A stretch of 63,907 nucleotides of DNA, the filler included, from Parasitella parasitica NRRL 2501 (Eukaryota; Fungi; Mucoromycota): the NCBI GenBank assembly GCA_025201805.1. It is 5 parts of 5 records of this genome, joined end to end, with 100 filler letters (N's around TTAATTAATTAA, not from the genome) between each part and the next. Parts side by side here need not be neighbours in the genome. Positions count along the whole stretch, not along the records: positions 26,595 to 50,063 come from MU619454.1; 4 more parts are not named here. One strand, given 5' to 3'. The translations under genes and the position numbers were made by a program. Shown piece after piece: positions 13,591 through 46,747 of the stretch (positions within the stretch are counted from its first letter, which is position 1; the number at the start of each line of letters is the position of its first letter). The notes beneath the pieces are model-generated. The model saw only the letters and a list, made by a program, of their open reading frames with translations, searched no databases and had not been told where the DNA came from.

Positions 13591-16491
13591 TTACTCTTCG
13601 TTGGTAGCAGCAGTGGCAGCGGCAGCGGCTTCCTTTTCAGCCTTCTTGGCTTCTCTAGCAGCCTCTTTGGCAGCATCTCTAGCTTCTCTAGCAGCCCTTT
13701 CCTCGGCTCTTCTTTTATCTTCAGCAGCACGCTTCTCCTCGTATTCCTTGTGCTTTTGTTCTTTTTCTTGTCTCTTTTCTTGTTCTTCCTTTTCATATTC
13801 ATAAAGCTCCAAGAGCTCTTCCTTGGCAGATTGAGCATCTTTCTTACCGCCACGAACGGTAATCTCATCAGGGTTAGTTGGAGAGGAAGAAGCGGGGGTT
13901 TCATCACCACGGTTGCCTGATCTAGGAAATTTGATAAACACGTTGTACTTGTCTTCGAGCTTCTTAACATAACGACCACTGGGGCCAATCAAGAAACGAT
14001 GGAATGCCTTGGGCACCTTCAAAGACAAAGTGACTTGATCAGCCAGGTTGGAAATTTGTGAGTTAATGCGATCCTTGGCAGCTTCTACATTAATCTTGGG
14101 ACCTTGAATGACAACCTTTACAGGGGCAGCATTCTTCTTGTCTTTCTTGGAGGCAACAAGCTTTTCTTCAGATTTGTTGTTCTCTCCAATATCAACCTTC
14201 ACACCAAGGTCATCCTTAAGTTTATTGATGTGAACACCGGCCTTACCAATGATATGAGCAGAAAAATTGGCAGGGATAAAGAATTCAGCACTAAATGGCT
14301 TGGAGAAATCAACCTGTTGGGCAGCATCGAAAGCCTTTTGCAAAGAAGTCATAACCCGGTTGACATCTTGGCTGAGGCCACGAACCTCAACCTTTTCGTT
14401 GGGACCGAAACGAATGATAGCATCCGATTCACCGATAATGGCGTTCAAAGTGGTACCTTTAGGGCCACGAAGAGCATCGTGGAACTCAACAGGGATCGAG
14501 GTAGTCTTGGAAATGTAATCAGAAGAATCGGCAGCAATCTTCTTCAATGCAGCAGAGGCATTTTCAAGAGAGGCCTTGGCAGCGGCCTTGTCGTCGCCAC
14601 CATAAATAAGTAAGATGGTAGTAGAGTTCTCTTTTTCATTAGGAACAGAAATGGTGACATTGTTGGTAGATTGAATGCGGTCGATAGCAGCACGTTGGCT
14701 AGAAAGAATGTATTGATGGAGATAAGATTCAATGTCGACAGAGCCAAAAACCTCAGGAGTCAGTTCGCGAACAATGTTGGAAATAGCTAATTGAGCAAGA
14801 GCAGCATCCTTCTCAACCTTACTAACAAATTCGAGATTGACGGCCTTCTTGAGTTCATCATATTGAGGTACACCGACTTGGACGTTGTGGTCATTCTCAA
14901 TCTTTTTGATACTGTTTTTGACCACCAAGTACTGGAGGGCAGATCGAGCATGCTTCAAGGCATCCTTCCCAGAAGATTTGTAGCTTTCAGACAAATCAAG
15001 TACACTGACATGAACAGCGCGAGCCTTTTCCATGACAACAGTCAAACCCTTAACCAAATCAGCTTCAGGGCCACGAATAGTAACATTCTCGGAAGGATCA
15101 TCGAAAGGAGGAAGCTCAACCGTACAGTTGGATTCAGCCAAAATTTCCTTGAGAGTCTCACCATTCTTACCATACAGATACTTATGCTGACGCTTAGGAA
15201 TGCTAATAGCTACAGTGCGGCTGGTGTTTGCGATATTGTCATAAATCTTCTCCAGAGCCTGCTTGGCTAATTGAATTTTCTCTTTATCGCCGGTGATAGA
15301 AATAGCCGTTACACGGTTAGTATTGCCATCCACAATCACAGCAGGGATATGGATCTTGACATCGAACTCCTCTTCCAACTTTTTGATGTTGTTGTTTTGA
15401 GGACCAGCAAGGAAGAGGTAAAACCTGCTATCCAAGTTGTCAATTTTGATAGTTTGTTTGGCGGCCTAAAATGACAGAAAACATGAATATCACACACACA
15501 CTCTCCCTCGCTCTCTCCAACAATGTTACACATTAGTGATTTCGTACCTTTTCGCCAACAATCTTTTGAATTTCTTCCTTGGCAATTCTGATGCCTTGAG
15601 CATCACCTACAATAGTAACGCTTACACTTTCATCTGAATCTTCGTTATGAACAAATTCTTCGTCGTCCTTGCGAGGAAAGTTGATACGAGTGTTGGATTT
15701 GGCTTCGATTTGCTTGAGATTGGCGCCCTTAGCACCGATGATGAAACGACGCGTGTTGGCAGGAACAGTGATATCTTCAGTAATCTATCAAATCCGATGT
15801 CTAAATGCCTAAATTTCTTTCTCCTCGCCCTTTATTTGCAACTTACTTTAATGACAAGACCAGCAATTAATTCTCTCTTGGCTCTAGCAACGTCAGCAGG
15901 AGAACCCTGGATAACAAAACTGGTTGTACCAGAACGGTTGGTAGAAGCAATAATGGTGGTGCCTGTCTCTTGAATGACCTTTTGGATGATATTGCTACTA
16001 TTAAAACCAAGAGGAGTGTTTGGCATGTTGGCAATTTGTTGGCTAGCAGGCAAGCCGAGAACATCAGTAACTTGGGTAGCGCCAGACTTCTTCTTTGAAC
16101 TGCCAGAAGCGGGAGCCATAGGTCTTGAGGGAGAGGAAGCAGGAGCCTTGACGCGAGAAGCATTAGAGGAGAACCAAGTGCTGGCAACAGGAGGGCAGGG
16201 AGAAGCAGACAGAGAAGGGAAAGCAGACTCAGAGTTCAAATCAAGTTCCTTCTTGGATTCAGGTTCTTTCTTGGGAGCAGACATATAAGTAGGTTTACCA
16301 ATGGGAGTAGGAAAATCACCAGCTATAAGAGGCTCATAGCTAGAATTATCCATCAAAACAACGGGATCATTAGGAGAAGGAGCAAAAGAATCTTGTTCAG
16401 CTTGTAGAGTTGATGGGTTGGCGGCCTGAGCGTGGAGAAGAGCTAATTTAGCAGCAGGAGACAAAGTATCCAAAGATTCGTTTGAAGTCAT
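13591..16491 (-). CDS. SCP160: multi-KH-domain RNA-binding protein, vigilin/Scp160-like, 3 exons
   Basis: N-terminal DLNSESAFPSL motif; repeated KH GxxG loops (IIGAKGANL, LYGKNGETL, IIGKAGVHI, LIGPSGRYV); two introns near 15785-15846 and 15467-15547. Confidence 0.8.
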
Positions 16492-16823
16492 AGTTTAGAA
16501 GAAGCAGGAAGCGAGAGTTGTACCGTGTTGTGATATGAGAAAAAGCAGCTTTTTTTTTTTATTTTTATAAAGATACGCTAATGATTTCTTTTCTGAATTT
16601 TTTAAATGGAAATTGTCAAAGGAAAGAAAGAGCAAAGAGCTGTGGACCCTTCGAAAATGGAGGGATAAACTGCTGTCTTTTTTGCCCTTTCAATTTCTGG
16701 CCAATGATACACTTACAGAACTATTGTAACGTGTGTGTTCGAAAGTAACTTGATGGACTTTTAATCAGGACACTGGCGTGTTCACACTCGACTTTTTTTG
16801 TTTTGGATTGTGCGTATTATATC

Positions 16824-26494: not shown

Positions 26495-26615
26495 NNNNNN
26501 NNNNNNNNNNNNNNNNNNNNNNNNNNNNNNNNNNNNNNTTAATTAATTAANNNNNNNNNNNNNNNNNNNNNNNNNNNNNNNNNNNNNNNNNNNNTCAGAT
26601 TTGCACTTCGAATTC

Positions 26616-28085
26616 ATGGCTCTTTCCGACAAACAAACATTGACTACAGGAAGGAATCTCATTGGTGGAAACACTGGAGATTCTCGCCATAACCCAAACA
26701 AACAAAAAGACCCAATGCGCTCATACGCACAGGTAATCAAGTCTAATCAAGCAAGGGATTGCTTTGATTTAGGACGCAGGACAGCAGCTGAAATAGGAGA
26801 ACTGTCTGAGGGTGGAAAACTGTACATCCACGCCAAGGATAAAAACTCCATAGTAATTGACGGTGCTCAGTTTACTGAGGCAAATGTCAATTTTAAGGAA
26901 CTCGGCGTTCTACTTCGGGAGCAATACCCGGAAGCACTTGGACTTCGCATTCGTAATGCAACCAAAGGCACTCACTACTTCGAAATCAATTTTCGTACAG
27001 CAGCAGCCAGGGAAGAGGCCCTGAAGAAAGATTTTGCCTACAAAGACAAGAAGGTGACTGTCAGTCGAACCTTCCCCAAGGATGCTACTATCATTCGAGT
27101 TAGTATCAGTGATCTACCCTTTGAGGACGAGGCCATCCTCAAGGAACATATGAGCGATATCTTTAAATACCATGGTGAAATTCTGGAAATGGGTCTACTG
27201 TACACTGTACATGGTCACTGGTTCACCGGTCGAGGCTTTGTTACTTTGAACAGACTGCCGGGAAAGGACTATAAGGATTTGACACCTCAAATGGAATCTT
27301 GGGACGATAATGAAAATCTAACGCTCACGTACACTAACATGAAGCCTAGTTGTAGTCGCTGTCATGTCACCGATCATGTCTTCGGTAACTGCCCCACAAT
27401 GATACGTAAGATGAAGAAATGTTACATTTGTGGTCACTCTGATCATTTGCAAGCTGGCTGCCCAGAGGCTTGGTGGAACCTCAACAAGATGGCTAAAAAG
27501 ATTGCCAAACGTAATGCAGCCCATAAGTCGCCCAATCAGCCAAGTACTCCTGATGACACCACGATTATCAAGGAATCTGCCAATTCTGCTGCTCCCTCTC
27601 AGATAGCCTCTAAAGACGACTCGCCAACTATCGTCCAGCAGATTGAGGGGTCTACCTCAGAGCATGAAGGACCGTCGAAGGTTGCTGACGGTACGACTTC
27701 TACCCAGGCCGATCTGGTGGTAGATCACCATGATGCCCTGGGAGCTCCCGACCAAATTGACCCGGCTCTCCCGGAGAGTAGCAATGATGCCCACCATCAG
27801 GAGGAGAGAGAAGATATGTCTGATGCCGACATGGGCTCTGATGTTGATGATAGCGACTTGGACATGTTTGAAGCTGCCAAGGAAGCTGAAGAGACCAATG
27901 TCTCTATTGAACAAGTTCTGGCCAAACAACGTCTGCTGCTCAAGAAGGCCAAAAACAAGAAGCAGAAAACGATCAAACAGATGAAAGGTAACAAGGCGTT
28001 GGGCCATTCCAGTTTTGGGGCTCGCGTAAGTGGTGGGGTTGCTAAGGGGCAGAAGCAATCCACCAACACTTCTTTAACGTTATAA
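26616..28085 (+). CDS. LINE ORF1 (RRM-like region plus two CCHC zinc knuckles)
   Basis: CSRCHVTDHVFGNC and CYICGHSDHLQAGC; WFTGRGFVTL; first ATG at 26616. Confidence 0.9.
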   Translation: MALSDKQTLTTGRNLIGGNTGDSRHNPNKQKDPMRSYAQVIKSNQARDCFDLGRRTAAEIGELSEGGKLYIHAKDKNSIVIDGAQFTEANVNFKELGVLLREQYPEALGLRIRNATKGTHYFEINFRTAAAREEALKKDFAYKDKKVTVSRTFPKDATIIRVSISDLPFEDEAILKEHMSDIFKYHGEILEMGLLYTVHGHWFTGRGFVTLNRLPGKDYKDLTPQMESWDDNENLTLTYTNMKPSCSRCHVTDHVFGNCPTMIRKMKKCYICGHSDHLQAGCPEAWWNLNKMAKKIAKRNAAHKSPNQPSTPDDTTIIKESANSAAPSQIASKDDSPTIVQQIEGSTSEHEGPSKVADGTTSTQADLVVDHHDALGAPDQIDPALPESSNDAHHQEEREDMSDADMGSDVDDSDLDMFEAAKEAEETNVSIEQVLAKQRLLLKKAKNKKQKTIKQMKGNKALGHSSFGARVSGGVAKGQKQSTNTSLTL

Positions 28086-28090
28086 TTATT

Positions 28091-31000
28091 ATGAGTAATC
28101 ATAATAATTATAGCCAAACCTAGAATATCAAATTTGGATCACTTAATTGTAGATATCTACTCAAAGTCAACAATCCCCAATTATCTGATTCTTTTATTCG
28201 GTATTTGAGGTTGCAAAAATTTGACATTTTTGCCTGCCAAGAAACCCATATACCCTCACTACACTTTGAAGATCGGACAGCCATGCTCAACATGAAATTC
28301 CAATCTTATCAAAGCTTATGGACATCCCAATGTGGATTATTGAATTTTAACAAGAATATCAACATGGAAAAAATACACTCCTCCAATGATGGTAGATTTA
28401 TATTGGCGAAATTATCGGTACCTGCAGAGCCAAACTTTTTGCCTATATACGTACTCAACGTATATGCACCTGCGGATACTATACAAAACAAAACCGTTTT
28501 TTACAACAATTTGATAGCATATCTCAAATCGCTAGATAATTATGGTGATATACTGGAACGTCTGATTCTTGCTGGTGATTTCAATTTTCAGTATGATTTA
28601 CGATTGCCTGGCAACACACCTAGCAAGCAACCAACAGCATTTGTGAACTTTACAGATTCATTTCTGCATGACTGCAACAACAATTACAGCGATCCCTTTT
28701 TTGAAACTCTACCAACCTTTGTTCGAGGGCGAGTGATCAAAACCCTCGACTATATCATGGTTGGTCGGCTTTTAAAAGATCTCTACTTTGACAACAACAT
28801 CCAATACATTTCTCGTGAGTGGACAGATCACCATCTACTGACGGTCAGCTTGAAGATACAACTGTCGAATACTGGAAAAGGATTATGGCGAGCAAATCCA
28901 AACCTCGTTCATTATAAGTCTTATATTCAGAAGATTAACTCTGGTATTTCGCACTTTATGCAGAGCATCCTTGCTCATTCTTCTGATAGCAATCAAATCA
29001 AATGGGATCGCTTAAAAGGCTACGTTCGTAAGTTAACTAAAGCTTACTGCAGCAATCGTTCTTCCTGGCGAAAAGAACGCTTAAAAGAGCTTCAAAGCAA
29101 ACGAAATCAACTGATGAGACAGTACAAACACGATCAAACGGCTTTGCAGGAACGCCTACCAAAGCTTGAACATAATATAGCGTATCTGGAACATGAACTG
29201 GCTCGAAATGCAAGCTTAAAAGCGGGTAGACGTTGGCTTGACAACAACGAGAATTCAGCAGGTTTTCTGAAAGCGACTGGGGAACGTCGCCTTGCTCAGC
29301 GAAAGATGGACATTCTCATTCACCCCACCTCGAACGCCCTTTGCTCCTCTACAATGGAAAAGCTGGATGCGGTACATTCCTTTTATCATGTACTATACTC
29401 CCCAGAGCCAATTCATAGGTACTCAATGGATAAGTTGCTTAGAGGAATTCAGAAGACAATTTCTGTCGAAGACGCGGATTTCATTATCTCGCGTATAGAT
29501 ATCGATGATATCCTCCAATCTGCCGCTCGTTGTCCAAAGGTCAGCAGCCCTGGGCGGGACGGACTTCCATATCCTATCCTTCGTTTGATTTTGGCTCACC
29601 CTGAGTGTCAGAATTTGGCTCTTCAAATATATAATGACGCTTTAAATCTTGGTATCTTCCCTCCCTCTTGGCAGGAAACTTGCATAGTCCTCCTTCCAAA
29701 ACAAGGAGACCTTAAGGATCTTGCCAATTGGAGGCCCATCTCCCTGATAAATACTGATTGCAAGGTATTCACTAGAATTTTGAATTCTCGGGTGATTGAT
29801 GCTGCTAATCAGGTGATTACGCAACAACAAGCGGGTTTTATGCCTAACCGTTTTATTGGCGATCACGGCCTCGCTCTGCGAATTCTGATGGAAGACGCTC
29901 AACTATATTCCAACCGAGCTCTTGGGGTGGCCATCGATAGCGCTAAAGCATATGATTATGTCAACGAGAACTACATTTGCAAAGTATTGCAAAAGTTTGG
30001 TTTTCCCTCCACATTCATCACAAGCATTCGCAATTTGTTCTTTAAGAACCAAATAGTGATTAACGTTAACGGGTTTTTGACAGATTCTGTACAGCAGAAA
30101 CGGGGACTACGCCAGGGGGATTCCATTTCTCCAGTGCTCTTTAACTTTGCCTTGGAACCTCTACTGCTAGCCATCTTAAATGATCCCAATATCAAAGGAT
30201 ACTCCTTGAACACCAAAGCCGTCAAATCATCGAACCTTCAAGTGCCATCTCCTGCTCCCATTAAACTGTTAGCTTATGCTGATGATTTATTAGTCATTGT
30301 CAACAGTAGTGTCGAGATGCAGGCCATTCAGGATCATATATCATGCTATGGCCGTGCATCCAATGCTAGGGTTAATTATCATAAGTCGGTCGCTTTCCCC
30401 CTCTCTGGGGACAGGTCCATCGTACGTCCAGATTTGTTCCGCCTCTCACGGCGCCTTCAATTCCAATGGCACGATTCAAATAGTGCGTCCTATATGAAAT
30501 ACCTTGGGTACCCCATCTGGTTTGGTGTCCACCAAAGGACGAAGTTTTGTGAAGAAAGTATCCTCAAGTTACAGGCGTCCCTCGACCGCCACTTAACGCG
30601 TAATATCTCTGTGTACGGCCGGGCAAAAATGGCCAATACTTTGTTCCTGGCTAGATTCTGGCACGTATTGAGGATTACTACGTTCCCTTTGGCCTTTATC
30701 AGGAAGATATCCTCTATGATTTACCAATTTATATGCTACAGGATCTTTCCGCCTATGAGGAAATCTGTCATTTACTTACCCAAAGAAGATGGTGGTCTGG
30801 CAGTTTTCGACATAACTGTGCAACAACATATACTACAGCAGCGTTATGTCAGGGCTCTCCTGATAGACGCCCCAGGTGAGCAGCAGCTGCCTAGTTTCCT
30901 CCTGCAGCTCCTCTCAACGTTCATACAAGTAACGTATGGGGCTCCCTACGTGCAGTTACCATTGTTGTTTAAGAACTTTCGCTGGGGCTCGCCTTTGACT

Positions 31001-31981
31001 GGCCTACATTGCCTCCTCCCAATTTTGCGCTCTGTCGATGCCTTTTATATTGATGATTCCTGGGATCAAAGCCAACTGTCTTTTGACACGCTGCTGAACT
31101 TTCCTCTCGTTGCCCTATGTCAACAGGATGACGCTGCCCATAGCATTGTTCAACACAGACAGATACGACAAAAACCGGCCAGCACTTTCTTAGAACCAAG
31201 TCGCTTATCCGAGGCTCTAGTCTTTAAAGCTCGAAGCAGCTGTCCCAACCCTGGCCTGTTGACAAAGATTCTTCGAGCGGTAAATTCGGGTGCTCTGTCC
31301 TTCATCTCGTCCATCAACGTATACTTGTCTTCTCCCTCTGGCCCTTCTCTGAGTGCCGCGGGCAGTGGTGTTGACTTCTCGCCGTATTTTCGTTCTAAGT
31401 TCATCTACCAAGGAATATTGGTCTTGTCCATGACTAATTCTCAGCTGCGAACGATGTATATGCGAGATCACCCACCAATCAACCGCCCAGCGCTGGATGT
31501 TCATCGCTTTACTGCTATATCCTCCTTCCTCCATACGCGGATGCCCAGCTCAGCGCGTAATCTTTGGTTTCGTTTGCTACATAACAAAGTCTCATCTAAG
31601 GTGAATTTGCGGCCTATCCTCAAGCTGCCGGATGAAATGTGTGTTTTCTGTGGCGGTCGTGAGACTACTGCCCACATGTTGTTCACTTGCCCATCTCATG
31701 CTGATGCTTGGCAAAACTACTTTGCCTTGGTCTTTGTGCCTTCTGGTCCACTGAATATGGATCAGGTATCTCAAGATGTAATGTCGTTAAACCTACAGGG
31801 ATACCGTCTTCTGGACTCCGAATTGAAAGTTTCTGTTTTCGAAGCGGTTACATGTCTACTGACTTCTGTCTGGCGTGCCAAATGGCAACACTATTTTGAT
31901 GCAGTTGCCCCTGACAACCAATCCATCGTGGATCGTGCCATGGTCAATTTGCGACACTTATCGGCTCTTAACATTTTGTAA
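28091..31981 (+). pseudogene. LINE ORF2 (APE endonuclease, reverse transcriptase, zf-RVT) with one premature stop at codon 11
   Basis: ATG 28091 MSNHNNYSQT*NIKFGSLNCR is in frame with the 28205 ORF; CQETH, AGDFN, LDYI, TDHH, WRPISL, GLRQGDSISP, AYADD, CVFC..ET..H..C. Confidence 0.9.
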
Positions 31982-35050: not shown

Positions 35051-35818
35051 ATGCGTTTCAATCCTATTTCTCTTGGCTTAGTTGCTACCATTTTTATGGC
35101 AGCTTGTGTTCGTGCTGGCCCAGTTGGTGATGTTGCTGGCGGTGATGTTGCAGGCGATGTTGGAAATGGTGGTGTTCGTGATGCTGTTACTGATTTAACT
35201 GGCGACCTTGGTAATGGTGGTGTAGATGAGACTGTCAAGGATGTAACTGATGGTTTAAATGTCAAGAGATCAGCCAGACTTTCTCGCAGAAAATTATTAA
35301 GACGCCAGGATGCCGCCGAAGAAGGTGCTGCTGGTGAAGAAGGTGCTGCTGGTGAAGAAAGTGCTGCTGCTGAAGAAGGTGCTGCTGCTGAAGAAGGTGC
35401 TGCCGAAGAAGGTGCTGTTACCGAAGATGGTGCTGCTAAAAAAGGTGCTACTAAAGTCGTTACTGCTCCCGCCCCCAAAGGTGAAGAAAGTACACACACA
35501 GGCTTAGGTAGACGTGAAACTGAAGAAGATGAAGAAGAAGAAGAAGAAGATGAGGAAGAAGAAGATGAAGAAGAAGAAGAAAGCAAGAAGGGCAAGAGAT
35601 CTGAAGAAGACGAGGAGGAAGAAGAAGCAGATGAGGAAGAAGAAGAAGAAGGAGACAAGAAAGGCAAGAGATCTGAAAAAGACGAGGAGGAAAAAGATGA
35701 AGAAGAGGCTGATGAACAAGACGTAGAAGCTGATGAAGAAGAAGCTGATGAACAAGACGTAGAAGCTGATGAAGAAGAGGCTGATGAGCTTGGCGATGAA
35801 GATCCCAAGGCTCATTAA
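35051..35818 (+). CDS. secreted acidic repeat protein SP1 (Kex2-type precursor)
   Basis: Signal peptide MRFNPISLGLVATIFMAACVRA; KR-SARLSRRKLLRR cassette; EEGAA repeats; GRR and 2x KKGKR followed by poly-E/D; TATAAAAG at ~34975; AATAAA downstream; intronless. Confidence 0.85.
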   Translation: MRFNPISLGLVATIFMAACVRAGPVGDVAGGDVAGDVGNGGVRDAVTDLTGDLGNGGVDETVKDVTDGLNVKRSARLSRRKLLRRQDAAEEGAAGEEGAAGEESAAAEEGAAAEEGAAEEGAVTEDGAAKKGATKVVTAPAPKGEESTHTGLGRRETEEDEEEEEEDEEEEDEEEEESKKGKRSEEDEEEEEADEEEEEEGDKKGKRSEKDEEEKDEEEADEQDVEADEEEADEQDVEADEEEADELGDEDPKAH

Positions 35819-36535
35819 ATTTCTTTGCGTTTTATAACAAAGCCATGTTTATCTTTTACGATATAGTTTCATTTCATTTTTCTTTGTATTCCTAAATTTA
35901 ATCAATAAATAAAACCACCTTTGCTTGTTCAGTACTTACCTCTGAAGTTGAGCTACCTGCTTGAGGAGTAGTTTTGTATGAGTAAGGAGTTGAAGCCACC
36001 CCTCATATGTATACTGTCTCCAAACGCAAATTTTTTCGTACAAAGGAGCTCTTTAATAGATCCTCGTTTCGGTGTTTTATTACTACCGCACATTATATTG
36101 AATACATATTGCAAGTTGTCAACATATACAACAAGTGTTCACGTGTAAGCTACTTTTATTAATTTTATACATTGATTTCTTTCCGTATGAAATGACTAGT
36201 AAAAGAATCGTGCCTGATGCCAACATTGATGCCACAAATTAGGGTTTAGAAATAAAATATGGTGTATAGACAATGCAAATAGATATTAAAAACTTTTCTG
36301 GTAAATAAGCTCATTTTAACAGCACTTAAATATCTTCTAGGAAAAGACATGTATTAAAAAAAAGGAGGAAAACGAGGAGAGGTTTCAAACATATGGATAA
36401 GACCACATTTATTAGAGTCGTAAATGGTTAAACCATTGACAGTTGTTGCGTCTATAAAAGATAGATTATCGACTCGTATTGTTTTTCCATCTACTTAACT
36501 TTTATTCTTAATCTTTTATATATACAACATTTAAT

Positions 36536-37522
36536 ATGCGTTTTAATATTCTTTCTCTTTGCTCAATTGCTACAGCATTCATTTCAGCATCCTTTGTTAG
36601 CTGTCTCGATATGTCACCTGGTACAAATGTAGCTGCAGCTTGTGCTATCAATGGATGTGTTCCTTTTGGTCAATCTTCAGGTGGAAAAGATATATTAAAG
36701 CGATCTTTGAGATTATCTCGAAGAAGGCTATCAAAACGCCATGGTTCTCATAAACACAAGGAGCAAGATGTAGCCGACACTTCCGAAGATTCAGAAGTCT
36801 ATGCATCTAGCTTTGACGATTCTGATCTTTTTGTTAATACAGCAGATGATGAATCTGCTAATTCTGCATCATCTAAAGATGTGGATATCGATCTTCCTTC
36901 ACTCAAGGATGTAGACATTGATCTTTCCTTGGTCGGCGATGACGATATTAATTCTGCTACAGCTGAAGAAGAAGCTGATGTGAATCCTGTGTCTACCGGT
37001 GATGTTACTCCTTACCCAGCGGTCCAAACTTATCCAGAGGTCCAAGCCTATCCAGAGGTTCAAGCCTATCCTGGCTATGAAACAACCCAAGATATCACCA
37101 GTACTACTGATTATGAGTCTGAACTTGAGCCAATTATTAATGATACCGTTGAATGGCCCAGTATGACTGAAGATTTGATTGAAGAGGCCGATGAAGATGA
37201 AGATGAAGATGAAGATGAAGATGAAGATGAAGAAGATGAAGAAGAAGAAGACGAGGAAGAAGAAGATGAGGAAGAAGAAGATGAGGAAGAAGAAGATGAG
37301 GAAGAAGAAGATGAGGATGAAGATGAAGATGAAGATGAAGATGATGATGAAGATGAAGATGAAGACGATCTTGCGTATAACTATTATTTGGCAGAAGCTG
37401 TTACAGCTGCTACAGCTGCTGTTACAGACGCTACAGCTGCTGTTACAAACGCTACAGCTGTTGTTACAGACGCTGCAGCAGATGCTACTACAGATGCTAC
37501 AGCAAGCGCTGTTACTTATTAA
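36536..37522 (+). CDS. secreted acidic repeat protein SP2
   Basis: Signal peptide MRFNILSLCSIATAFISASFVSC; KR-SLRLSRRRLSKR cassette; YPEVQA repeats; ~60-residue poly-D/E; C-terminal AVTxATA heptads; TATAAAAG at ~36453. Confidence 0.85.
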   Translation: MRFNILSLCSIATAFISASFVSCLDMSPGTNVAAACAINGCVPFGQSSGGKDILKRSLRLSRRRLSKRHGSHKHKEQDVADTSEDSEVYASSFDDSDLFVNTADDESANSASSKDVDIDLPSLKDVDIDLSLVGDDDINSATAEEEADVNPVSTGDVTPYPAVQTYPEVQAYPEVQAYPGYETTQDITSTTDYESELEPIINDTVEWPSMTEDLIEEADEDEDEDEDEDEDEEDEEEEDEEEEDEEEEDEEEEDEEEEDEDEDEDEDEDDDEDEDEDDLAYNYYLAEAVTAATAAVTDATAAVTNATAVVTDAAADATTDATASAVTY

Positions 37523-38586
37523 ATCAGCTTCTCTGCTAGAAATTCAGTGCCAAAAGTCTTTCTTTATTAGTATCTACAAAGACGTAGTGTAAAAGTCTAT
37601 ATATAATCAATATTGGAAAATAAAATGATTTTTATTTGTTCCATCCAAAAGAAAAAAAAGTTTTCTGCTGATTTCCGGTAATGAATAGAGGATCTGCGTT
37701 CCAACATGTGAACATGCAATCAAACTTTAGGGGTAATTTTTTACTGCTCAACTTGATTAACTCGTATGTTTCTTCATACACATACATGTAAGACTACCTA
37801 TGTAGAGATGGCAGGAATTATGATAGTCTCTGTATAGTATTAAAAAAAAAAAAGCTCAGAATTATGATATGCGCAACGTTTACCAGATATTTTATACTTT
37901 TCCCAATAATAAATATGATACTACTATATAGCAACTATAGTGCACGCTAATTAGCATTGTAACAAAATTGAAAGCTAATAGTAATCTGAAGGAACAACAA
38001 AGACTCACAATATCAGATAAATGAAACTTGTGATCCCTAGTCTACTCGATGGGTTTATAATATAAAGTACAGATCATTTTTTTAGACTAGTCCATGCATG
38101 CAAGACGATCCTTTTACTTTTGACCCTTATTCACTTGCTTAATGTGCAAGTACCTAGCTGTACTTTAGTTGGAAATGTACGATGCCATCTATACAATCAA
38201 ATAAGCGTATATCTGCACTTGACAATAATTGGTACTGTGTAAATCGTTAAATAAGAAAGTAAGGATATCATTCTCTGGTAAAATTACCAGAGAATTGTCC
38301 AACATTATACATATAGATTAAGGAGGCCCTTAGATAACGTAGATGTGGAAGTTAGAATTTATGTACAAGCTGACGAAAATTAGGGACACTGTGTTGGGCT
38401 TTCTTGGTAAAAAAAATAAGAAAAAAGCCCCCTTGGAAAATCATGTACCTCGTTTAAGCTAGCAAAAAGCTTGGCTTCCAAGCGCTTTTTATTCGCGGAA
38501 AAAAGTCAGAGCGATGGATTCAGGGTATAAATACTCGCCCAATTTTCGTGAAAGTGCTTTCTCTTTAGCCATCCGTATTATAAACA

Positions 38587-39189
38587 ATGCGCTTCACTGT
38601 TATTTCTGCTGCCATCTTTCTGGCCATAACCTCTTGTTACTCTGTTGATGCTACTTTAGAAGGTTCTGCATCTCATAATGTAATATCTGTCACGGGCGTA
38701 TCTGGCATCCCAAACAAAGCTGAAAAAAGATCGTTTACTTCTCGTAGCAGAGCTTTTACCCGCGAAAACCATCAACGCCGTAATGGCTCATTACTGCCTA
38801 ACATTGTCCTTCCATCAATCACACCAGCTCAGCCTGCTCCAGCTGCCGCTCCCCCAGCCCCACAGGCTGTATCTTACCCTGCTGCTCAAGGCTATTCCCT
38901 GCCTCAAACTGCCAGCTATCCAGTAACGCAACCAATCACACAACCAGCAACAAGCTACCCACCTCCACAAACAGCAAACTACCCACCGGCACAAGCAGTA
39001 AACTATCTCCCACAGCCACCAGTTCAAAATTACAGTCCCCAGCCAAATCTTGCTTTACCTACTCTTGTGCAAGCGCCAGCAAAAAAAGAAGAAGATGATG
39101 ATGATGAAGACGAGGAAGAAGAAGATGAAGACGAAGAAGATGAAGAAGATTATGATGCAGACGATCTTGTTACCCGTCGTCGTCGCTAA
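38587..39189 (+). CDS. secreted P/Q/Y-repeat acidic protein SP3
   Basis: Signal peptide MRFTVISAAIFLAITSCYSVDA; KRSFTSR-SRAFTRENHQRR; (S/N)YPxxQ repeats; poly-D/E; C-terminus YDADDLVTRRRR; TATAAATA at ~38526. Confidence 0.85.
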   Translation: MRFTVISAAIFLAITSCYSVDATLEGSASHNVISVTGVSGIPNKAEKRSFTSRSRAFTRENHQRRNGSLLPNIVLPSITPAQPAPAAAPPAPQAVSYPAAQGYSLPQTASYPVTQPITQPATSYPPPQTANYPPAQAVNYLPQPPVQNYSPQPNLALPTLVQAPAKKEEDDDDEDEEEEDEDEEDEEDYDADDLVTRRRR

Positions 39190-40113
39190 ACTATTTTAGC
39201 TTTTAAAAGCAATCTTTTTGTAAAGTACATTTAATAAAATCATATAAATAATAGCATATTCCATCTAGTTAACTTCTGTAATTCTATAAAAATTGATGCT
39301 TGCTACACGAACCATTTTTATCTTGAGATAGGGATGTGCAGGAATTTAAGCTAAGAGAGGATAGATAGGACGTCAGCGGATAGTATAGAATACCGAGATT
39401 AAAGGAGTATCACCATTAAAGCCTGTATTGCTTTTGGTCAAATGCGATGTCTGCATGTACTAATTACTTACGTTTACCAAGATAGACCTCCTTTATTAGC
39501 CATGCATTTCCAAGTACACTCTACGATTATTAAGAATTCCTAGAATACAACAAGCAGAGAGCAGCTAAACGGATCAGCCGTCGTTTCATTGAGTCGATCT
39601 TTGAATACTCGTCAAGTTTTTTTGTAAGAGATGCAACGCTTTAAGATCCGTGCGACCTCTGTGTGTACCTTTTTCAAGCTTGGTTGCTTTGATTTGGCAG
39701 CTTGCATGCATTTTTGTCACTCATACACACATCTGAAAGATGTGAAGAGTAATTTTTCCAAATAATACAAAACTACTTTCATAAATCCAAGATGATGCGG
39801 AAATGTCGGTGTTGACAATTATATATTGATAAAAGGCGGCTGATTCTACCTAGAGAGTGAAAATTACTCTTTCTAAATCGATGCAGACATTTTATCCTCT
39901 CCTACGCAATCTACAGATCTCCTTGCCATAGGATCAATGGTCGAATATCAAAACTACATGTATATGCTTTTGGTGATAATAGATTCAATTGTATAAAATA
40001 ACGTATAGATAAGACTTATTCTATTTCTACCTGACAAGCTACATGAGATAAAAGGAACAAGAAAATTTTTGCTTTATCTGCATGTTTCTTCCATTCAGAA
40101 TATAATTAACACC

Positions 40114-40743
40114 ATGCGCTATACTATTTTACACGTTGGAATACTTACCACAATGGCCTTTACAGCTTTTGCAGATATATCTGATCTCTTTGAAGACACA
40201 ATTGGAGAAAGTAACAGAGATGTGTTGGATAAAGTTGTCAGCAATCAGTTTGCTGGAAGTGTCGTCAATGCTATGCCTGCTTCTTCTCCACAAACAAGTT
40301 ATTTCCAAGCAGTTCCTGCAAATTACTATCCTCAAACTGGTTCTGCAAGTTACTATCCTCAGGCAGTTCCTGCAAATTACCCTCAGTCTGTCCCTGCAAA
40401 TTACCCACAGGCAGCTCCTGCAAATTACCCTCAAGCAGCTCCTGCAAATTACCCTCAAGCAGCTCCTGCAAATTTCCCCCAAGTAGCTACAGCCTATAGT
40501 CGTCCAGCAACTGATAATATGGCTCAAGGTTCATCTTCACCTGATATTCAATATATTCCATATCGCGTACCCGAGAATTCTATTAGTAAATTTAAAGGCA
40601 ATGGCTATGTTAATGAGAAAGAAGATGATGATGATGACGAAGATGAAGATGAAGAAGATGAAGAAGAGGAGGATGAAGAGGAAGAGGATGAGGAAGAATT
40701 CGACGCAGATGATTTAATCACTCGTCGTCGTCGCCGTCGTTAA
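40114..40743 (+). CDS. secreted P/Q/Y-repeat acidic protein SP4
   Basis: True start at ATG 40114 (MRYTILHVGILTTMAFTAFA signal peptide); PANYPQAA 24-bp tandem repeats; poly-D/E; C-terminus FDADDLITRRRRRR. Confidence 0.85.
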   Translation: MRYTILHVGILTTMAFTAFADISDLFEDTIGESNRDVLDKVVSNQFAGSVVNAMPASSPQTSYFQAVPANYYPQTGSASYYPQAVPANYPQSVPANYPQAAPANYPQAAPANYPQAAPANFPQVATAYSRPATDNMAQGSSSPDIQYIPYRVPENSISKFKGNGYVNEKEDDDDDEDEDEEDEEEEDEEEEDEEEFDADDLITRRRRRR

Positions 40744-41180
40744 AAACGCAACACTAGCGCTTTTAGTAAACTATCTTTTTCTTTCTGTTTATTGTAAATA
40801 AACTATACTATTTTATGGTCACTGTTCCTGAATTTCACGAGTATTCAATTTTCTTTTAATCCTTTAGTGTTATGGCAAAACACGGGGAACCAAATATTCT
40901 GTGAGGTTGCAAAAGCGTGCAGTACCAAGAAAATAGAAATAAACATAAACATAAACAAAGAGATCACCTGCCTTGCAAATAATGCAAGCATTACCGACTA
41001 CATGTATCGAGAATCAAGATCTTTCAATGACATGTCAAATTTTGGTTGCATATGAAAAGCAGATCCAAGGTCTTATGTAAATGAATGTAATGCCATACAG
41101 TCTGCAGGTAAACAGTTGGAAATTCAAGCATATATATATAACAACCAAACTTTTTGGAAAAGTAGAAAAAATATCTTCTA

Positions 41181-41540
41181 ATGAAATCCACCAAGCTTAT
41201 CCTTGCCTTGGCTTTGGCTTTCATCTATACCTTGTTGGTTGCATGTGCTGATGCAAAGAAATCAATCAAAAAACGAAGCTTGGCAAGATTCAGTGCAAGA
41301 TCTACTGATTCTGAGGTTATTTACATTTCTGACAATGCTCCAGCATTAAAGGCCGCTAAGGCTGATATTCCATCTGTCACCTCACCTGTCGACCAAAGGA
41401 AATTCAAAGGTACAACTACGGCCCCGGTTGCTACTACGAAAAAAGCAAAGAAGGTTAGACCTTACGATCCTGAACATGAGGAACATGAGGGAGAAGAGGC
41501 GGATGAAAATGAAGAGGATGAGGATGAGGTTGGAAATTAG
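41181..41540 (+). CDS. small secreted protein SP5 with basic N-region and acidic tail
   Basis: Signal peptide MKSTKLILALALAFIYTLLVACADA; KKRSLARFSAR; C-terminal EHEEHEGEEADENEEDEDE; TATATATAA upstream, AATAAA downstream. Confidence 0.8.
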   Translation: MKSTKLILALALAFIYTLLVACADAKKSIKKRSLARFSARSTDSEVIYISDNAPALKAAKADIPSVTSPVDQRKFKGTTTAPVATTKKAKKVRPYDPEHEEHEGEEADENEEDEDEVGN

Positions 41541-41662
41541 TGTAGCACATTTCTAAGCACACATGTACCAAATAAATGGAACAGCATAACGCTTGATTTA
41601 TTTATATAATATATATTGCTACATCGTTACATAATATATTCGTTGATAGAGGATATAGTCAA

Positions 41663-43759
41663 TTATTTCATAAGCTTGTTAAACTTCCAGCAATTGAACC
41701 AAAGATGATTATCGGGAGAAACAGGGATAAGGCCTTTACTCTTGTATGAATTGATGTGGTTTCGAATGGGTGTCTCTCCATTGGAGAAAAGCTTGGGCTG
41801 AACCACAGCTAAAATGTAGGTCATAAGTAAATCTCCAGTTAATCCTTCTAAACCAAGTATTTCGACTTCATCCTCGAGCGGGTTTGCAACAAAATCATAT
41901 TCGGACCAGATATCACCACCACCCCACGAACCGCCTTCATTGGAAGCGGCTACACTTGTAGCTGCTTTATGGAACTTTTGACGTTTCAAAGTATATAAAC
42001 CATCTCTTTTGCATTTGAAGGCGTTGATTTTCTTGACTTCAACATCAGGAGTCAATAGCTGTACAGACAACGTGGCATGAAAATAGTAACTTGGGATACA
42101 GTCAGATTGATTTGCGTAATATGAATTTACGAACGATATCAATAGGTCAGGCTGACCAGGCCGATTGGAGCTGATTGTCCAGAAGTTTTTTTCTGTTTCC
42201 GAGCTATTCTCATTTCTATAACCATAGTTATGATCATCGCTGTCGTCTGAATCACTGTCATCTGAATCATTATCACTGCTACCTCCAATCACAATGATCT
42301 TTTTGCCATTTTTTAGAGTTTTTGTCAAAGACAATAAACGTTCCATGGTGTGCAAATCCTCGAGGTTCGTGATGGTCTTCTTCAGGATCTCAAGAGGGTC
42401 ATTCCTTACTTTTGGAGGCAAAGGATGCTTGGTTAGAATAGCATCACGGATAGGAATCAAGTCTTTATCACATACAGCAAGACGGGGAAAGTTGTCAACT
42501 GCAAACTGGCGGAACCAGCCTTTAGTGAGCGTAGTACAGATTCGAAGAAGGGCAGAGCGGTAAGCAAATGCAGGGTCCAATGTTAGTTTTGGCAGCAAGA
42601 ATCGCTCAAGAGAGATGACCATAGCCTCTTCTTTCACGCACTGTATTTGCTTTTCGTAGGGTGCTTTTTCAAATAACTCGCGCGACACCATGGCCTTGGA
42701 CTTGTCAGTCTTCAATTGGTCGTAGATGGGTTCATTTCCGTACATGACAATAGCGTGAACATCATCATGCGGTATGTGGCGAGTGACAAATAAATCGTCA
42801 TCACGACCAAGAAAGTCCTCGTTGGATACATCCAAGCTGATATGAGCGCCAGGAGTACCTCTGAATGCTTCGACTTCTAAGGTACGAGTTTTTAAAAAGT
42901 CTTCGAGTTCGGCCGATCTTGCAGGAGGTGTCAAGGGTTTGCTTTTTTCAGCGCGAATACCAAAGTTAACAGATGTTGAGCCATTAGAGCTGGATGCCAG
43001 TAATACGCGAAGACCATGAAGATCAGCAATGTGCTTTTCGAAGTAGGCCGGCCAGAAAATATGAGATGTCTTGAGCGCTTCTAACAATTCAATGGGGGAC
43101 ACAATGCATTGGAGACCTTTGCTGGGACCAATGGAGAAGTTCATGTAGATACCACTATCTTTTCCGCTATTGCACATACTCAATATTTGGCCAGCAGAAG
43201 AGACTTCGGGAGAGACTTGTTCATTTGCAGCTATTTCGATTTCAAATTTCATGCTCGATTCCTTGTTTTTACCAGAAATTTTGTATAAATGCTCTGGGAT
43301 TGTCTTGAGCTTCTTTTTAATATCATTAGGCAATGGTCTTCTCTTGACGACATTGGCATTCAAAGGTTGCATGACGAGCTTAATTTCGAGGTTACAATTG
43401 CTTTGCTCGCTTTTTATAAGCTCTATTGCTTGTTGCGCAGTAGCTACAATATCCCAATCAGCACATGGGCGGAAGGAGGGAAACCAGAAGGCAGCAGCAC
43501 GAGATCCAATGATGACTGGATTGGCTTGGTTGCTCTCCTCCTTGTTGTCGCTTTGGATTTTTTCAAGATATTTCACAACGCTGACTGCTCCTTCAGCTAC
43601 AACAAATGAGGCAGGAAGCTTTACCACTTCACGAACATCCGCAGCAGAGGGTGATGAAGAACTAGTTTCTCCAACACTGAACACACCATCTGTACGACTA
43701 CGTTTATCACTGCCTGACTTTTTGGGCTCGTTGGTCTTTGTGCGCTTCTTACCAGACAT
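41663..43759 (-). CDS. intronless 698-aa putative Pol-beta-superfamily nucleotidyltransferase-like protein of phage type
   Basis: IIGSRAAAFWFPSFRPCADWD (hGS...DxD), then LKTSHIFW...KHIADL, HDDVH, EEAMVISLERF, ALLRICTTLTKGWFRQFAVDNF; motif order recalled from an uncharacterised tailed-phage family (possibly DUF7275, not verified); K/R-rich N-terminus. Confidence 0.7.
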   Translation of the reverse strand: MSGKKRTKTNEPKKSGSDKRSRTDGVFSVGETSSSSPSAADVREVVKLPASFVVAEGAVSVVKYLEKIQSDNKEESNQANPVIIGSRAAAFWFPSFRPCADWDIVATAQQAIELIKSEQSNCNLEIKLVMQPLNANVVKRRPLPNDIKKKLKTIPEHLYKISGKNKESSMKFEIEIAANEQVSPEVSSAGQILSMCNSGKDSGIYMNFSIGPSKGLQCIVSPIELLEALKTSHIFWPAYFEKHIADLHGLRVLLASSSNGSTSVNFGIRAEKSKPLTPPARSAELEDFLKTRTLEVEAFRGTPGAHISLDVSNEDFLGRDDDLFVTRHIPHDDVHAIVMYGNEPIYDQLKTDKSKAMVSRELFEKAPYEKQIQCVKEEAMVISLERFLLPKLTLDPAFAYRSALLRICTTLTKGWFRQFAVDNFPRLAVCDKDLIPIRDAILTKHPLPPKVRNDPLEILKKTITNLEDLHTMERLLSLTKTLKNGKKIIVIGGSSDNDSDDSDSDDSDDHNYGYRNENSSETEKNFWTISSNRPGQPDLLISFVNSYYANQSDCIPSYYFHATLSVQLLTPDVEVKKINAFKCKRDGLYTLKRQKFHKAATSVAASNEGGSWGGGDIWSEYDFVANPLEDEVEILGLEGLTGDLLMTYILAVVQPKLFSNGETPIRNHINSYKSKGLIPVSPDNHLWFNCWKFNKLMK

Positions 43760-44528
43760 GTTTTGTAGGATTAATTGATGGAGAAAACGAAAACGAGAAA
43801 AAAGAAAAGAAATACTTGTATTTCAATCAAGTTTTTTGCAAGCTTTTATTTAATCAACACCCGTTTGAGAGTATCATGTTACTAGATTTTTGCAGCTGAT
43901 TGAAAGCTTTATTTAACATTATCAAGATACATGAAACATTTGGCTTCTCAAAACTCAAATATGTATGTATTTAAACAATAAACGAGGAATTCAATCGGCT
44001 TGATGTAATCTAAAGCGCAATCCATCATTCTGCTAGTTCGCATAGTTTCAATGGGCACTATGACACTCTCCCGTATAACTGCACATAGTTTTGTACGAGA
44101 TAACGTATGATGGTGAAAGTGGACAGGTTCTGGCCTTGTCGTAGCAGTTATTACGTTGCGCTTACATTGTTATGCTTTGATGATATAGTCCAACTGTCCT
44201 GAGAAAAGTTGGTCGGTCCCTCGTTTGTATATACTCTGACATGTATGCATACTTATGACAAGGTATGTGATAATATTATACTCACAAAAAAGATCGGCCT
44301 TGTGTAGAAGAGGTTGTCCCATGATTTGTATTTCATAGATAAAGAAATTCACAGGGATGAAATCTCTTTATCCTCCTTGCAAACCTGCCACACTTGCCAA
44401 TACAAAAACCACTTTTTATTCGATCATATTGTAATGGAGATGTTAGAGCAAGGAAACAATACAATTATCTTACCTCTTTGCTAAATAGACAATCATTAAC
44501 TTTTTCTTCTAATACATATACAAGCAAA

Positions 44529-44890
44529 ATGCGTTTCGAACTATATCTTGGTTTATTTACTGCCGTTTTCATGGCAGCTTCTGTGCTCGGTAATACTATG
44601 GGCAATGTTGCTAAATCTGACTTCAATCATGGTCTTCCTTGTGCATTCAAACATGTTGGTATAAAAAGATCAGTTAAACTTACTCCCAGGAATTTATCGA
44701 AACGTAGAAGTGGTACTGACGCTTCTGGTCCTGGAGAATCCAGTGGTAGTCCGCATTTCTGACCAAATTACTATTTAAGTTGCTGATGATGATTTAACTG
44801 TGTGTATTGACGCTGAAGGCAATAAAAAATTAATTTGCAGTGAAATGAGAAAAGGCAAGGGTGATGAACCAAGCATATATAGGAGGTAGT
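44529..44890 (+). pseudogene. truncated or decaying paralogue SP6 of the secreted family
   Basis: ATG 44529 MRFELYLGLFTAVFMAASVLG (close to the SP1 signal peptide); KR-SVKLTPRNLSKR cassette; stop at 44760-44762; a shifted frame continues ..VADDDLTVCIDAEG..RKGKGDEPSIYRR*. Confidence 0.6.
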
Positions 44891-45428: not shown

Positions 45429-46747
45429 ATGGATACGACATACGACCCGAATACATTTCTAAGCGATAGCCAAGCAGCAGTGCTTCAATTTCAAGATTTA
45501 TTCGGACAGGATGAATTGGAGTTTGGAGAAGATAATTCCTCATATTATGATGAATTAACTTTTGGTGTGTACACTTAAAATACAACGACAGAGAAGGCTA
45601 AAATTAACATCATGTATAAATAGTCCCAGATCACACCAACCTGGTTGATACAATCGAACCCTCAGAACTAATTAATCAGAACTATGTTGAGAACATGATC
45701 GGTACCATTATTACAGACGCACCTGTAACGAAAAGACGACGCAGCGGCTCTTGTAGCTCGAACTCGTCATTATCTTCCTACACATCGTCATCTTCTTCAT
45801 CTGAAGGAGAAAGCAAAACATTTTCATCGTTCAGTTCTCGAAGATCAAGCCTCAGTAGCGATTCTGAAGATGAGCAAGAAGAAATAATCGCTCCTTTTAT
45901 GCATCGTCGGCAAATGGAAGAAATGATTTTGGATAAAATCACAAACCAACTCGACGGTGAAAAATTACCTGGTATTTTAACCATCATATCTAAGGAACAA
46001 CAGGAAGAAGAAGAAGAAGTAGAGATTGATCTAGCTCGATTAAATCGAGACCAATTATCGAGGGTATTGTCATATATTGATGCCTGCCTCAAGGAAAAAC
46101 AGGGTGGGCCCAAAGTCAAACTTTCAAATTACACCTTAAAACCAAAACCCATTGCTCCTACATTGGCACAGCAGCAGCAGAAGCAACAACAAACAACGTA
46201 CCGCAGCAATCGCCGTAATCGTAAAAGATCAATTGTCGAGACGGGTCACACTGTTTGTGGATCGACACACTCTCAATTGTCATCCTCACATGGACCACTA
46301 TCCATGTCGGCACTGACAGAACTGGAATCAAGTAGTAACTACAAGAAATCAATCAGCAAACGAAAAAGAAGAGCAAAGAAAAGAAAATCAGAAGACGATA
46401 TGACAGTTCAGATGCCTAATAAACATCATACATTCAAGGATAGCATTGCTTCAACGAAGCCAAAACGAAAAACAGCAGTTCATAAGCGTAAATTACTTGA
46501 ACGAATGCTGCAGTCATCCAGTGACAGTGAGGACGATGACGCAGATGGATGTTCTGGCATCATTGTATTTGGCAACGAACAAATGGATCTTGCTGTCACT
46601 CAAAACAAAACAATTGTACATCAGGAGAGAAGACTATCTATAATTCAGAAAAACATCACACACAAGATAACAGAACCGGATAATGGTGTCAACCGTGGTA
46701 TTCAAGAAGATGATTATGACGATGAGTTGATCGATATCATGATGTAA
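45429..46747 (+). CDS. ET (extra-terminal/NET) domain-containing nuclear protein, 2 exons
   Basis: ILDKITNQLDGEKLPGILTII...EVEIDLARLNRDQLSRVLSYI resembles the BET/Taf14 ET domain; ATG 45429, intron ~45565-45623; basic NLS-like KRKRRAKKRK. Confidence 0.65.

Follow-up and report, generated by a model that had tools for sequence, protein, structure and literature searches.

A Mucorales-restricted gene cluster of candidate secreted, dibasic-processed, low-complexity proteins in Parasitella parasitica

Kex2-processed repeat proteins (KEPs), such as the yeast alpha-factor precursor and Ustilago maydis Rep1, carry an endoplasmic reticulum (ER) signal peptide followed by segments that are bounded by conserved KR or RR sites. 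Surveys have reported KEPs in Mucoromycota without an assigned function (PMC6339444, PMC7329392). Here we describe a gene cluster that resembles them in part. It lies in a 63,907-nucleotide (nt) stretch of DNA from Parasitella parasitica NRRL 2501 (assembly GCA_025201805.1), which we call the window. Positions 35051-44890 hold six co-oriented plus-strand open reading frames (ORFs), g1 to g6, all of which appear in our ORF listing. The original prediction took them for six equivalent genes. Five of them, g1 to g5, are genuine genes that are conserved, transcribed and under purifying selection; the sixth is treated separately below. The sequence analysis supports filing the products as lineage-restricted, low-complexity proteins that are putatively secreted and dibasic-processed. 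The six ORFs are:

35051-35818, plus strand: g1, 255 amino acids, net charge -65; signal-like N-terminus, G/D/V-rich pro-region and KR-SARLSRRKLLRR cassette (nt 35264-35305), then an E/A-rich and poly-E domain with conserved internal dibasic sites RR154, KR182 and KR206.
36536-37522, plus strand: g2, 328 amino acids, net charge -93; signal-like N-terminus, short Cys-containing pro-region and KR-SLRLSRRRLSKR cassette (nt 36698-36739), then YPEVQA repeats, a 60-residue D/E run and an A/T/V-rich tail.
38587-39189, plus strand: g3, 200 amino acids, net charge -13; signal-like N-terminus, KR-SFTSRSRAFTRENHQRR cassette (nt 38725-38781) and conserved NGS-LLP(D/N)IVLPSI, then P/Q/Y-rich repeats, an acidic tract and an invariant C-terminal ...EDEEDEEDYDADDLVT-RRRR (nt 39109-39186).
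40114-40743, plus strand: g4, 209 amino acids from the first ATG, inside a TTG-ORF starting at 40069, net charge -26; signal-like N-terminus, conserved ADISDLFEDT... segment, six ANYPQAxP repeats, acidic tract and the C-terminal tail ...EEEFDADDLIT-RRRRRR (nt 40663-40740).
41181-41540, plus strand: g5, 119 amino acids; signal-like N-terminus (MKS...), KKR-SLARFSAR segment and conserved ...RPYDPE(H/Q)EEHEGEEADE acidic C-terminus.
44529-44762, plus strand: g6, a 77-amino-acid ORF with only a signal-like N-terminus, a pro-region and a KR-SVKLTPRNLSKRR cassette (nt 44664-44708).

Comparison with related loci, selection and transcription all identify g1 to g5 as genes. The Parasitella parasitica contig LN723314 (Parasitella below) has the same order and orientation, with genes of 258, 293, 206 and 177 amino acids followed by a DUF7275 gene and a BET-domain gene. 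At the Mucor lusitanicus locus, where the cluster spans about 8 kb, genes of 299, 280, 227, 160/173 and 129 amino acids, the last being the g5 orthologue, are followed by the BET gene, with no DUF7275 gene. The Parasitella and M. lusitanicus genes are clear 1:1 syntenic orthologues of g1-g5, and all are single uninterrupted ORFs. The best conserved member is g3 (M. lusitanicus orthologue KAF1806546.1), with 79-81% amino-acid identity to Parasitella, where the DUF7275 protein has 85%. Nei-Gojobori ratios of nonsynonymous to synonymous substitution rates (dN/dS) for g1-g5 are 0.22-0.36 against Parasitella and 0.09-0.30 against Mucor (g1 0.29-0.36; g2 about 0.30; g3 0.22; g4 0.09-0.34; g5 0.24, M. 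lusitanicus), and that of the neighbouring DUF7275 gene is 0.13.

Transcription was assessed with X7, a public run that we infer to be a transcriptome, and X1, a DNA run used for comparison. The contig comparison covered 6 kb from the g1 3' end through g5. The X7 contigs match the window at 99% or more and cover the g1 3' end, g2, g3, the g4 region and g5 (41191-41434). X7 depth falls to zero in the g1-g2 (35800-36400) and g2-g3 (37600-38000) spacers, where X1 is uniform, and X7 has splice-like joints that are absent from X1. The g2 contig (36525-37179 and 37375-37567) starts 11 nt before the ATG, and the g3 contig starts at 38581, 6 nt before the ATG. Both run through their ORFs without joints, masked D/E repeats aside, which supports an intronless structure for g2 and g3. 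The prediction of intronless genes is thus supported for these two and agrees with the single-ORF orthologues.

All six ORFs start like a signal peptide by heuristic criteria, as had been predicted. MRF or MRY opens five of the six (MKS in g5). In each, position 2-3 holds a basic residue, residues 5-20 include a hydrophobic core (10-residue Kyte-Doolittle (KD) mean 1.8-3.2), and the core is followed by small residues at -3/-1. The other predicted modules are also real and occur in differing combinations. A cationic cassette, KR-S-x-R-L-S-R-R-x-L-x-[KR]-R, is near-identical in g1 and g2 and has a clear copy in g6; it is diverged in g3 (longer, KR-SFTSRSRAFTR...RR) and g5 (short, KKR-SLARFSAR), and g4 has no N-terminal dibasic cassette. 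YP..Q or YPQ repeats number three in g2, four in g3 and six in g4. The longest D/E runs of g1 to g4 are 20, 60, 21 and 26 residues, and their pI is about 4. Poly-Arg tails of four (g3) and six (g4) residues follow ...[YF]DADDL[VI]T, and g1 contains repeated KKGKR-SE[EK]DEEE units. Pairs of the type [KR]R are 4-17 times commoner than in shuffled sequences in g1-g4 and g6 (P <= 0.009), and are enriched in seven g1 orthologues as well; g5 has no such enrichment. Each protein has zero to four cysteines, none of them conserved in the mature parts.

Neither domain nor structure searches place these proteins in a described family. None of g1-g6 reached the gathering score in a Pfam scan, and a PDB profile search matched only low-complexity TAF9 tails (E about 1e-3). 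An AlphaFold2 model built on the g3 alignment had a predicted local distance difference test score (pLDDT) of 54 and a predicted TM-score of 0.13, and its sole helices were that of the signal and a short one within the cassette. The Protein Atlas models had pLDDT of 0.41 (g3) and 0.37 (g2), and Protein Atlas searches with both proteins returned no usable relatives. The cluster proteins are predicted to be intrinsically disordered.

KEPs are, by sequence features, the nearest operational class, and only g1 approaches the definition. A heuristic ER signal peptide is present in all six ORFs, with N-termini conserved across paralogues, and g1 has two or three acidic units, each following a dibasic site. 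Unlike in KEPs, near-identical units bounded by KR or RR are absent: the units of g1 are only loosely similar, g2-g6 have none, and g2-g5 combine a single cassette with long non-repeated or low-complexity regions. No characterised KEP is similar in sequence to the cluster proteins, and the conserved elements here are the termini of a large product.

Fungal wall proteins, namely glycosylphosphatidylinositol (GPI)-anchored proteins, PIR proteins and hydrophobins, share the signal peptide, repeats and low complexity, and Kex2 processing is known for PIR proteins. However, the cluster proteins differ from each of these groups. A GPI anchor was rejected, as five of the six end in a hydrophilic 20-residue stretch (mean KD -1.4 to -2.5) and no C-terminal hydrophobic signal is present; in g2 this stretch is Ala/Thr/Val/Asp-rich with a mean KD of +0.46, which is not GPI-type hydrophobic. 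No DGQ-containing repeat (PIR: Q-[IV]-x-D-G-Q-[IV]-Q) occurs in any protein of the window, and Pfam found none. With zero to four cysteines, the proteins also lack the conserved multi-cysteine pattern of hydrophobins and small cysteine-rich effectors. Any attachment to the wall would have to be ionic. Oomycete RxLR-dEER effectors are similar in having a signal peptide, an Arg/Leu motif about 30-50 residues downstream and then acidic residues, and g2 contains RSLR. The RxLR motif is nevertheless confined to g2 of the window and its Mucor copies, being absent from g1, g3-g6 and Parasitella g2. The cluster proteins have no folded effector domain and are conserved in saprotrophic Mucor species. 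This class was rejected as well, with the motif not conserved and the models disordered, without a WY-type fold.

To define the range of the family, 1.84 billion representative proteins were screened with a profile built from 14 g3 orthologues. This search gave 43 matches at E <= 1e-3 and nine at E <= 1e-10; matches without the C-terminal motif were low-complexity noise. The named relatives come from Mucor species, Parasitella, Cokeromyces, Benjaminiella, Blakeslea and Gilbertella, all of them Mucorales, and all are called 'hypothetical'. A direct g1 protein search was swamped by poly-E words and gave one match, which does not indicate that relatives are absent, and g1 orthologues were read from syntenic loci instead: Parasitella, M. 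lusitanicus, Cokeromyces and two further loci (L005 and L009), each with two or three conserved internal [KR]R sites. Its range is confined to Mucorales, and it corresponds to no family described so far, in agreement with the original view of an undescribed system. In the literature searched, the Mucor orthologues were not mentioned by NCBI or UniProt accession, and neither JGI ids 1350937, 1350938, 1337973 and 1464551 nor the accessions occurred in the supplementary text of the transcriptome, secretome and epigenome papers queried.

Gene order suggests how the cluster was assembled. In Cokeromyces the order is RhoGAP, ABC transporter, g1-like, g3-like and BET, with a bZIP gene about 7 kb further on, past four small uncharacterised genes. 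Assembly GCA_025528875.1 has ABC transporter, g1-like, g3-like and BET, with two small uncharacterised minus-strand genes before BET and the bZIP gene after it. A Mucorales contig from JGI has g1-like, g3-like, a 481-amino-acid g4-like gene and BET. In Blakeslea a g3-like gene stands beside the same RhoGAP and ABC genes, and g1 is missing. Judged from these orders, g1 and g3 beside the BET gene are the ancient core, and g2, g4 and g5 are later additions (g4 being also in the JGI contig); the DUF7275 gene and a LINE upstream are lineage-specific insertions. Since the core next to BET is old, the cluster does not sit in a compartment rich in transposable elements, as had been proposed, and instead lies in deeply conserved synteny among ordinary genes.

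The age of the cluster, by contrast, was rightly predicted. In addition to the synteny across genera, g3 and g4 are recognizable paralogues (tblastn E 2e-19), and hhalign related the N-termini of g1 and g2 (probability 96.7%), g1 and g3 (88.7%) and g2 and g3 (66%). Because hhalign aligned only the signal peptides, homology of the cassette rests on the visible motif of g1, g2 and their orthologues. One Gilbertella member joins a g1-like G-rich pro-region to a g3-type body. These comparisons support shared modules within an old paralogous family, and 'shuffling' is not needed to explain them.

Certain conserved elements hint at how the products may be processed. Seven g1 orthologues keep the dibasic sites of the cassette and, within the acidic domain, one to three further ones. 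These internal sites, typically G-L-[KR]-R-R-[SE] and K-[KR]-R-S, are at equivalent positions despite divergence around them. In g3, the stretch right after the second dibasic site, (N-G-S)-L-L-P-D-I-V-L-P-S-I, is nearly invariant, and its NGS N-glycosylation sequon is present in 12 of the 14 aligned sequences. At the C-terminus of g3 and g4, a stretch of 20-25 residues, ...E-D-E-[DE]-E-E-D-E-E-[DE]-[YF]-D-A-D-D-L-V-T, hardly varies among 31 proteins, even in the order of its D and E residues. Between 0 and 6 Arg residues follow it, and one natural homologue ends exactly at ...DADDLVT. Codons within the motif vary synonymously (GAA/GAG, GAT/GAC, CTT/TTA, CGT/CGC), and the constraint is therefore at the protein level. 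The invariant motif might imply a specific partner, which is speculative.

Two further observations concern these tails. The Arg codons (39109-39186 and 40663-40740) are only CGT or CGC in every species examined. The residue-by-residue order of D and E is kept across Mucorales families in a tract that would be classed as low-complexity, which is unusual for an acidic repeat.

Taken together, we think it probable, with some reservation, that the paralogous genes of this locus form a Mucorales-restricted, vertically inherited cluster encoding kexin-processed, secretory, disordered polyanionic pre-pro-proteins, possibly wall or matrix components. In the proposed pathway, a cleavable N-terminal signal peptide, suggested by its sequence and conservation, would direct the products to the ER. 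A late-Golgi kexin of the Kex2 type would then cut at the dibasic sites, as their conservation and clustering suggest. This cleavage would remove the pro-piece and the Arg-rich cassette and yield a number of acidic peptides from g1. In g3 and g4 the C-terminal Arg run may be a variable, removable cap that a Kex1-type carboxypeptidase trims to ...[YF]DADDLVT. The released P/Q/Y-rich poly-D/E polypeptides would act outside the cell, a speculation drawn from composition. Their most likely role, also speculative, would be as non-covalently bound polyanions of a chitosan-rich wall or sporangial matrix, serving as counter-ions or Ca2+ binders.

Several points weigh against this proposal. The signal-peptide call comes from the heuristic criteria and not from a dedicated predictor, and secretion and cleavage are both read from the protein sequences. 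The dibasic sites of g4 are only in its tail, and g5 has a single one. The basic modules carry charges of +6 to +8 and the acidic tracts -25 to -90; as the former cannot neutralise the latter, 'charge capping' would be partial at best. The wall or matrix role draws on composition and on the textbook view of chitosan-rich Mucorales walls. For all the functions originally suggested (wall polyelectrolyte, calcium oxalate biomineralisation, processed effectors), the direct bearing of these data is limited to composition and the conserved dibasic sites. The identification of X7 as RNA is deduced, and its contigs do not reveal strand. Because a spliced antisense RNA, described below, overlaps the 5' end of g4, sense transcription of g4 is not proven. 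Finally, g5 and g6 are degraded in Parasitella, and not all members are thus indispensable.

A bolder form of the proposal is tentative and, in our judgement, has a modest chance of being correct. The g1/g3 pair and its derivatives might form a Mucorales-specific extracellular polyelectrolyte system of latent polyanions. Their cationic modules, namely the Arg cassette and the poly-Arg tail, would be removable, and processing by kexin and carboxypeptidase would activate the polyanions. The invariant end ...EDEEDEED[YF]DADDLVT would serve as a hitherto unrecognised motif for docking to, or assembly in, the chitosan-rich wall or sporangial matrix. If so, the proteins would represent a novel type of structural wall protein, bound ionically and without a counterpart in Dikarya. 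Mucorales walls are unlike those of Dikarya in their chitosan, glucuronans and polyphosphate, and to our knowledge their protein components are almost unknown. The conserved, lineage-restricted cluster provides candidate secreted polyanionic genes, also in M. lusitanicus, a genetically tractable opportunistic pathogen. With this gene set it can be asked by what means a polycationic wall retains its proteins, and whether these shape the surface of spores or sporangia. If the products are merely dispensable secreted fillers, the finding has annotation value only.

Alternatively, the genes could encode precursors of small bioactive peptides, with the Arg-rich cassette peptides or the g1 acidic peptides as products (signals or antimicrobials) and the acidic parts as carriers or neutralising pro-pieces. 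The dibasic-bounded cassette is conserved between g1, g2 and g6 and across species, g1 has its repeated units, and precursors of this kind, whose roles are unknown, have been surveyed in Mucoromycota (PMC6339444, PMC7329392). However, the internal RR sites would cause kexin to fragment the cassette, and near-repeated units are found in g1 only. In g3 and g4, conservation is highest in the mature N-terminus and the acidic C-terminal motif rather than in a repeated core peptide, and no modifying enzymes are encoded nearby at the Parasitella and M. lusitanicus loci. We regard peptide precursors as an unlikely explanation.

It is quite improbable that the proteins are instead luminal residents of the secretory or vacuolar system, either high-capacity Ca2+ buffers or cargo-sorting factors, with the C-terminal motif as a retention or sorting signal. 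An analogy is provided by calreticulin and calsequestrin, ER proteins whose acidic tails buffer Ca2+, and the invariance of the C-terminal ~20 residues down to the order of D and E suggests a conserved partner. On the other hand, there is no H/KDEL-type signal, and housekeeping luminal proteins are usually less lineage-restricted. Members of the cluster are also lost or degraded in some species (g5 and g6 in Parasitella; Blakeslea has no g1).

The original prediction also raised biomineralisation, in which poly-D/E proteins would nucleate or shape the calcium oxalate crystals of sporangia. Acidic D/E-rich matrix proteins occur in other biominerals, and those of shells, teeth and otoliths resemble the cluster proteins in their secretory signal, disorder, very long D/E runs and pI of about 4. 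The extreme acidity of the cluster proteins, with D/E runs of 20-60 residues, and the confinement of the family to Mucorales would fit. However, the matrix proteins are not homologous to the cluster proteins, for which neither a link to a mineral nor expression in sporangia is known. No protein associated with Mucorales crystals was found in the literature searched on acidic wall proteins and calcium oxalate. Mineral binding alone would also leave unexplained the P/Q/Y repeats and the exact D/E order of the C-terminal motif with its [YF]DADDLVT end, and the Arg-rich cassettes are a further difference from matrix proteins. A crystal-shaping role is very unlikely in our view.

That the ORFs are chance frames in GAA/GAT-rich simple repeats, as the abundant low-complexity DNA and the long ORFs in alternative frames and on the opposite strand might suggest, is hardly credible given the synteny and 1:1 orthology across genera, dN/dS well below 1, synonymous variation under invariant protein motifs and X7 coverage limited to the ORFs; this artefact is ruled out for g1-g5 and holds, only partly, for g6 alone.

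The sixth ORF differs from the others. Its frame stops at 44760-44762 and not at 44890, and the latter could be reached only if the frame changed, as it would across a hypothetical 34-nt intron at 44746-44779 (GTAGTC...CTGAC...AAG) with CTGAC as a branch-like site. The remaining segment is:

44780-44890, plus strand: possible second exon or frame-shifted remainder of g6, ...ADDDLT...YRR-stop, read from sequence only.

This segment is not conserved in Parasitella. Around g6, only 44462-44570 of the window aligns to Parasitella, in which the ORF stops after 20 codons, and conservation ends after the first ~40 nt of coding sequence. Within the cluster, g6 resembles only the g1 N-terminal module (E 2e-5); it lacks an acidic tract and a counterpart in Mucor. 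We consider g6 probably a decaying or lineage-specific partial paralogue of g1/g2, and the equivalence of all six genes does not extend to it. In Parasitella LN723314, the counterparts of g5 and g6 (12555-12704 and 15732-15935 of the locus) are truncated, unannotated ORFs of 49 and 20 amino acids after Met. The truncations reflect either real gene decay or assembly errors; the contig has N runs inside the g1 orthologue. Upstream of the genes, TATA-like boxes are present at -76, -83, -61, -122 and -46 for g1-g5, respectively, and none was found for g6. Among shared promoter words, the six upstream regions yielded one 8-mer in four of the six, which is not convincing.

The X7 joints reveal one transcript on the opposite strand:

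39423-40148, minus strand: spliced transcript whose joints have CT..AC ends and occur only in X7.

Its introns are at about 40088-40148 (spanning the g4 ATG), 39565-39668 and 39423-39471, with a low-depth joint at 38235-38287; two of the four joints have GTAAGT 5' splice sites. The transcript (window 38235-40440) extends from inside g4 over its start codon into the g3-g4 spacer, perhaps beyond g3. The spacer (39190-40128) has no minus-strand ORF of 60 amino acids or more, and the transcript is apparently a non-coding antisense or intergenic RNA.

The flanks of the cluster consist of conserved genes (BET-domain, PGK, aconitase, ABC transporter and RhoGAP). Other features in and around it are:

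26601-31981, plus strand: LINE-like element upstream of the cluster, with ORF1 (494 amino acids) and ORF2 (1258 amino acids).
41663-43759, minus strand: DUF7275 gene between g5 and g6, 698 amino acids, intronless, with DUF7277, DUF7275 and DUF7276 domains.
Downstream of the cluster: BET-domain gene, identified by Pfam.
About 45429-45578, plus strand: short ORF upstream of the BET-domain ORF, MDTTYDP...LQFQDLFGQDELEFGEDNSSYYDELTFG.

ORF2 of the LINE-like element contains RVT_1 and zf-RVT domains and ORF1 a Cys/His knuckle-like segment; the element is apparently an intact non-LTR retrotransposon. It has no counterpart at the same position in Parasitella, the alignment of which begins only at 33986. 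The DUF7275 gene splits the array, which is co-oriented as predicted and not uninterrupted. It lies inside the cluster only in the source genome and Parasitella (85% identity) and is missing at the M. lusitanicus position. Dozens of copies of the family are found in Rhizophagus and other Glomeromycotina and several in Mucor bainieri, a pattern that suggests a mobile or otherwise proliferating gene.

The MDTTYDP ORF is also kept in Parasitella (16528-16677 of the locus) and in a distant Mucorales contig (L005, 17313-17495), where it has been called as a separate gene of 60 amino acids. This ORF is probably the first exon of the BET-domain gene, missed in annotation; in contrast to the cluster genes, the BET-domain gene would then contain an intron.

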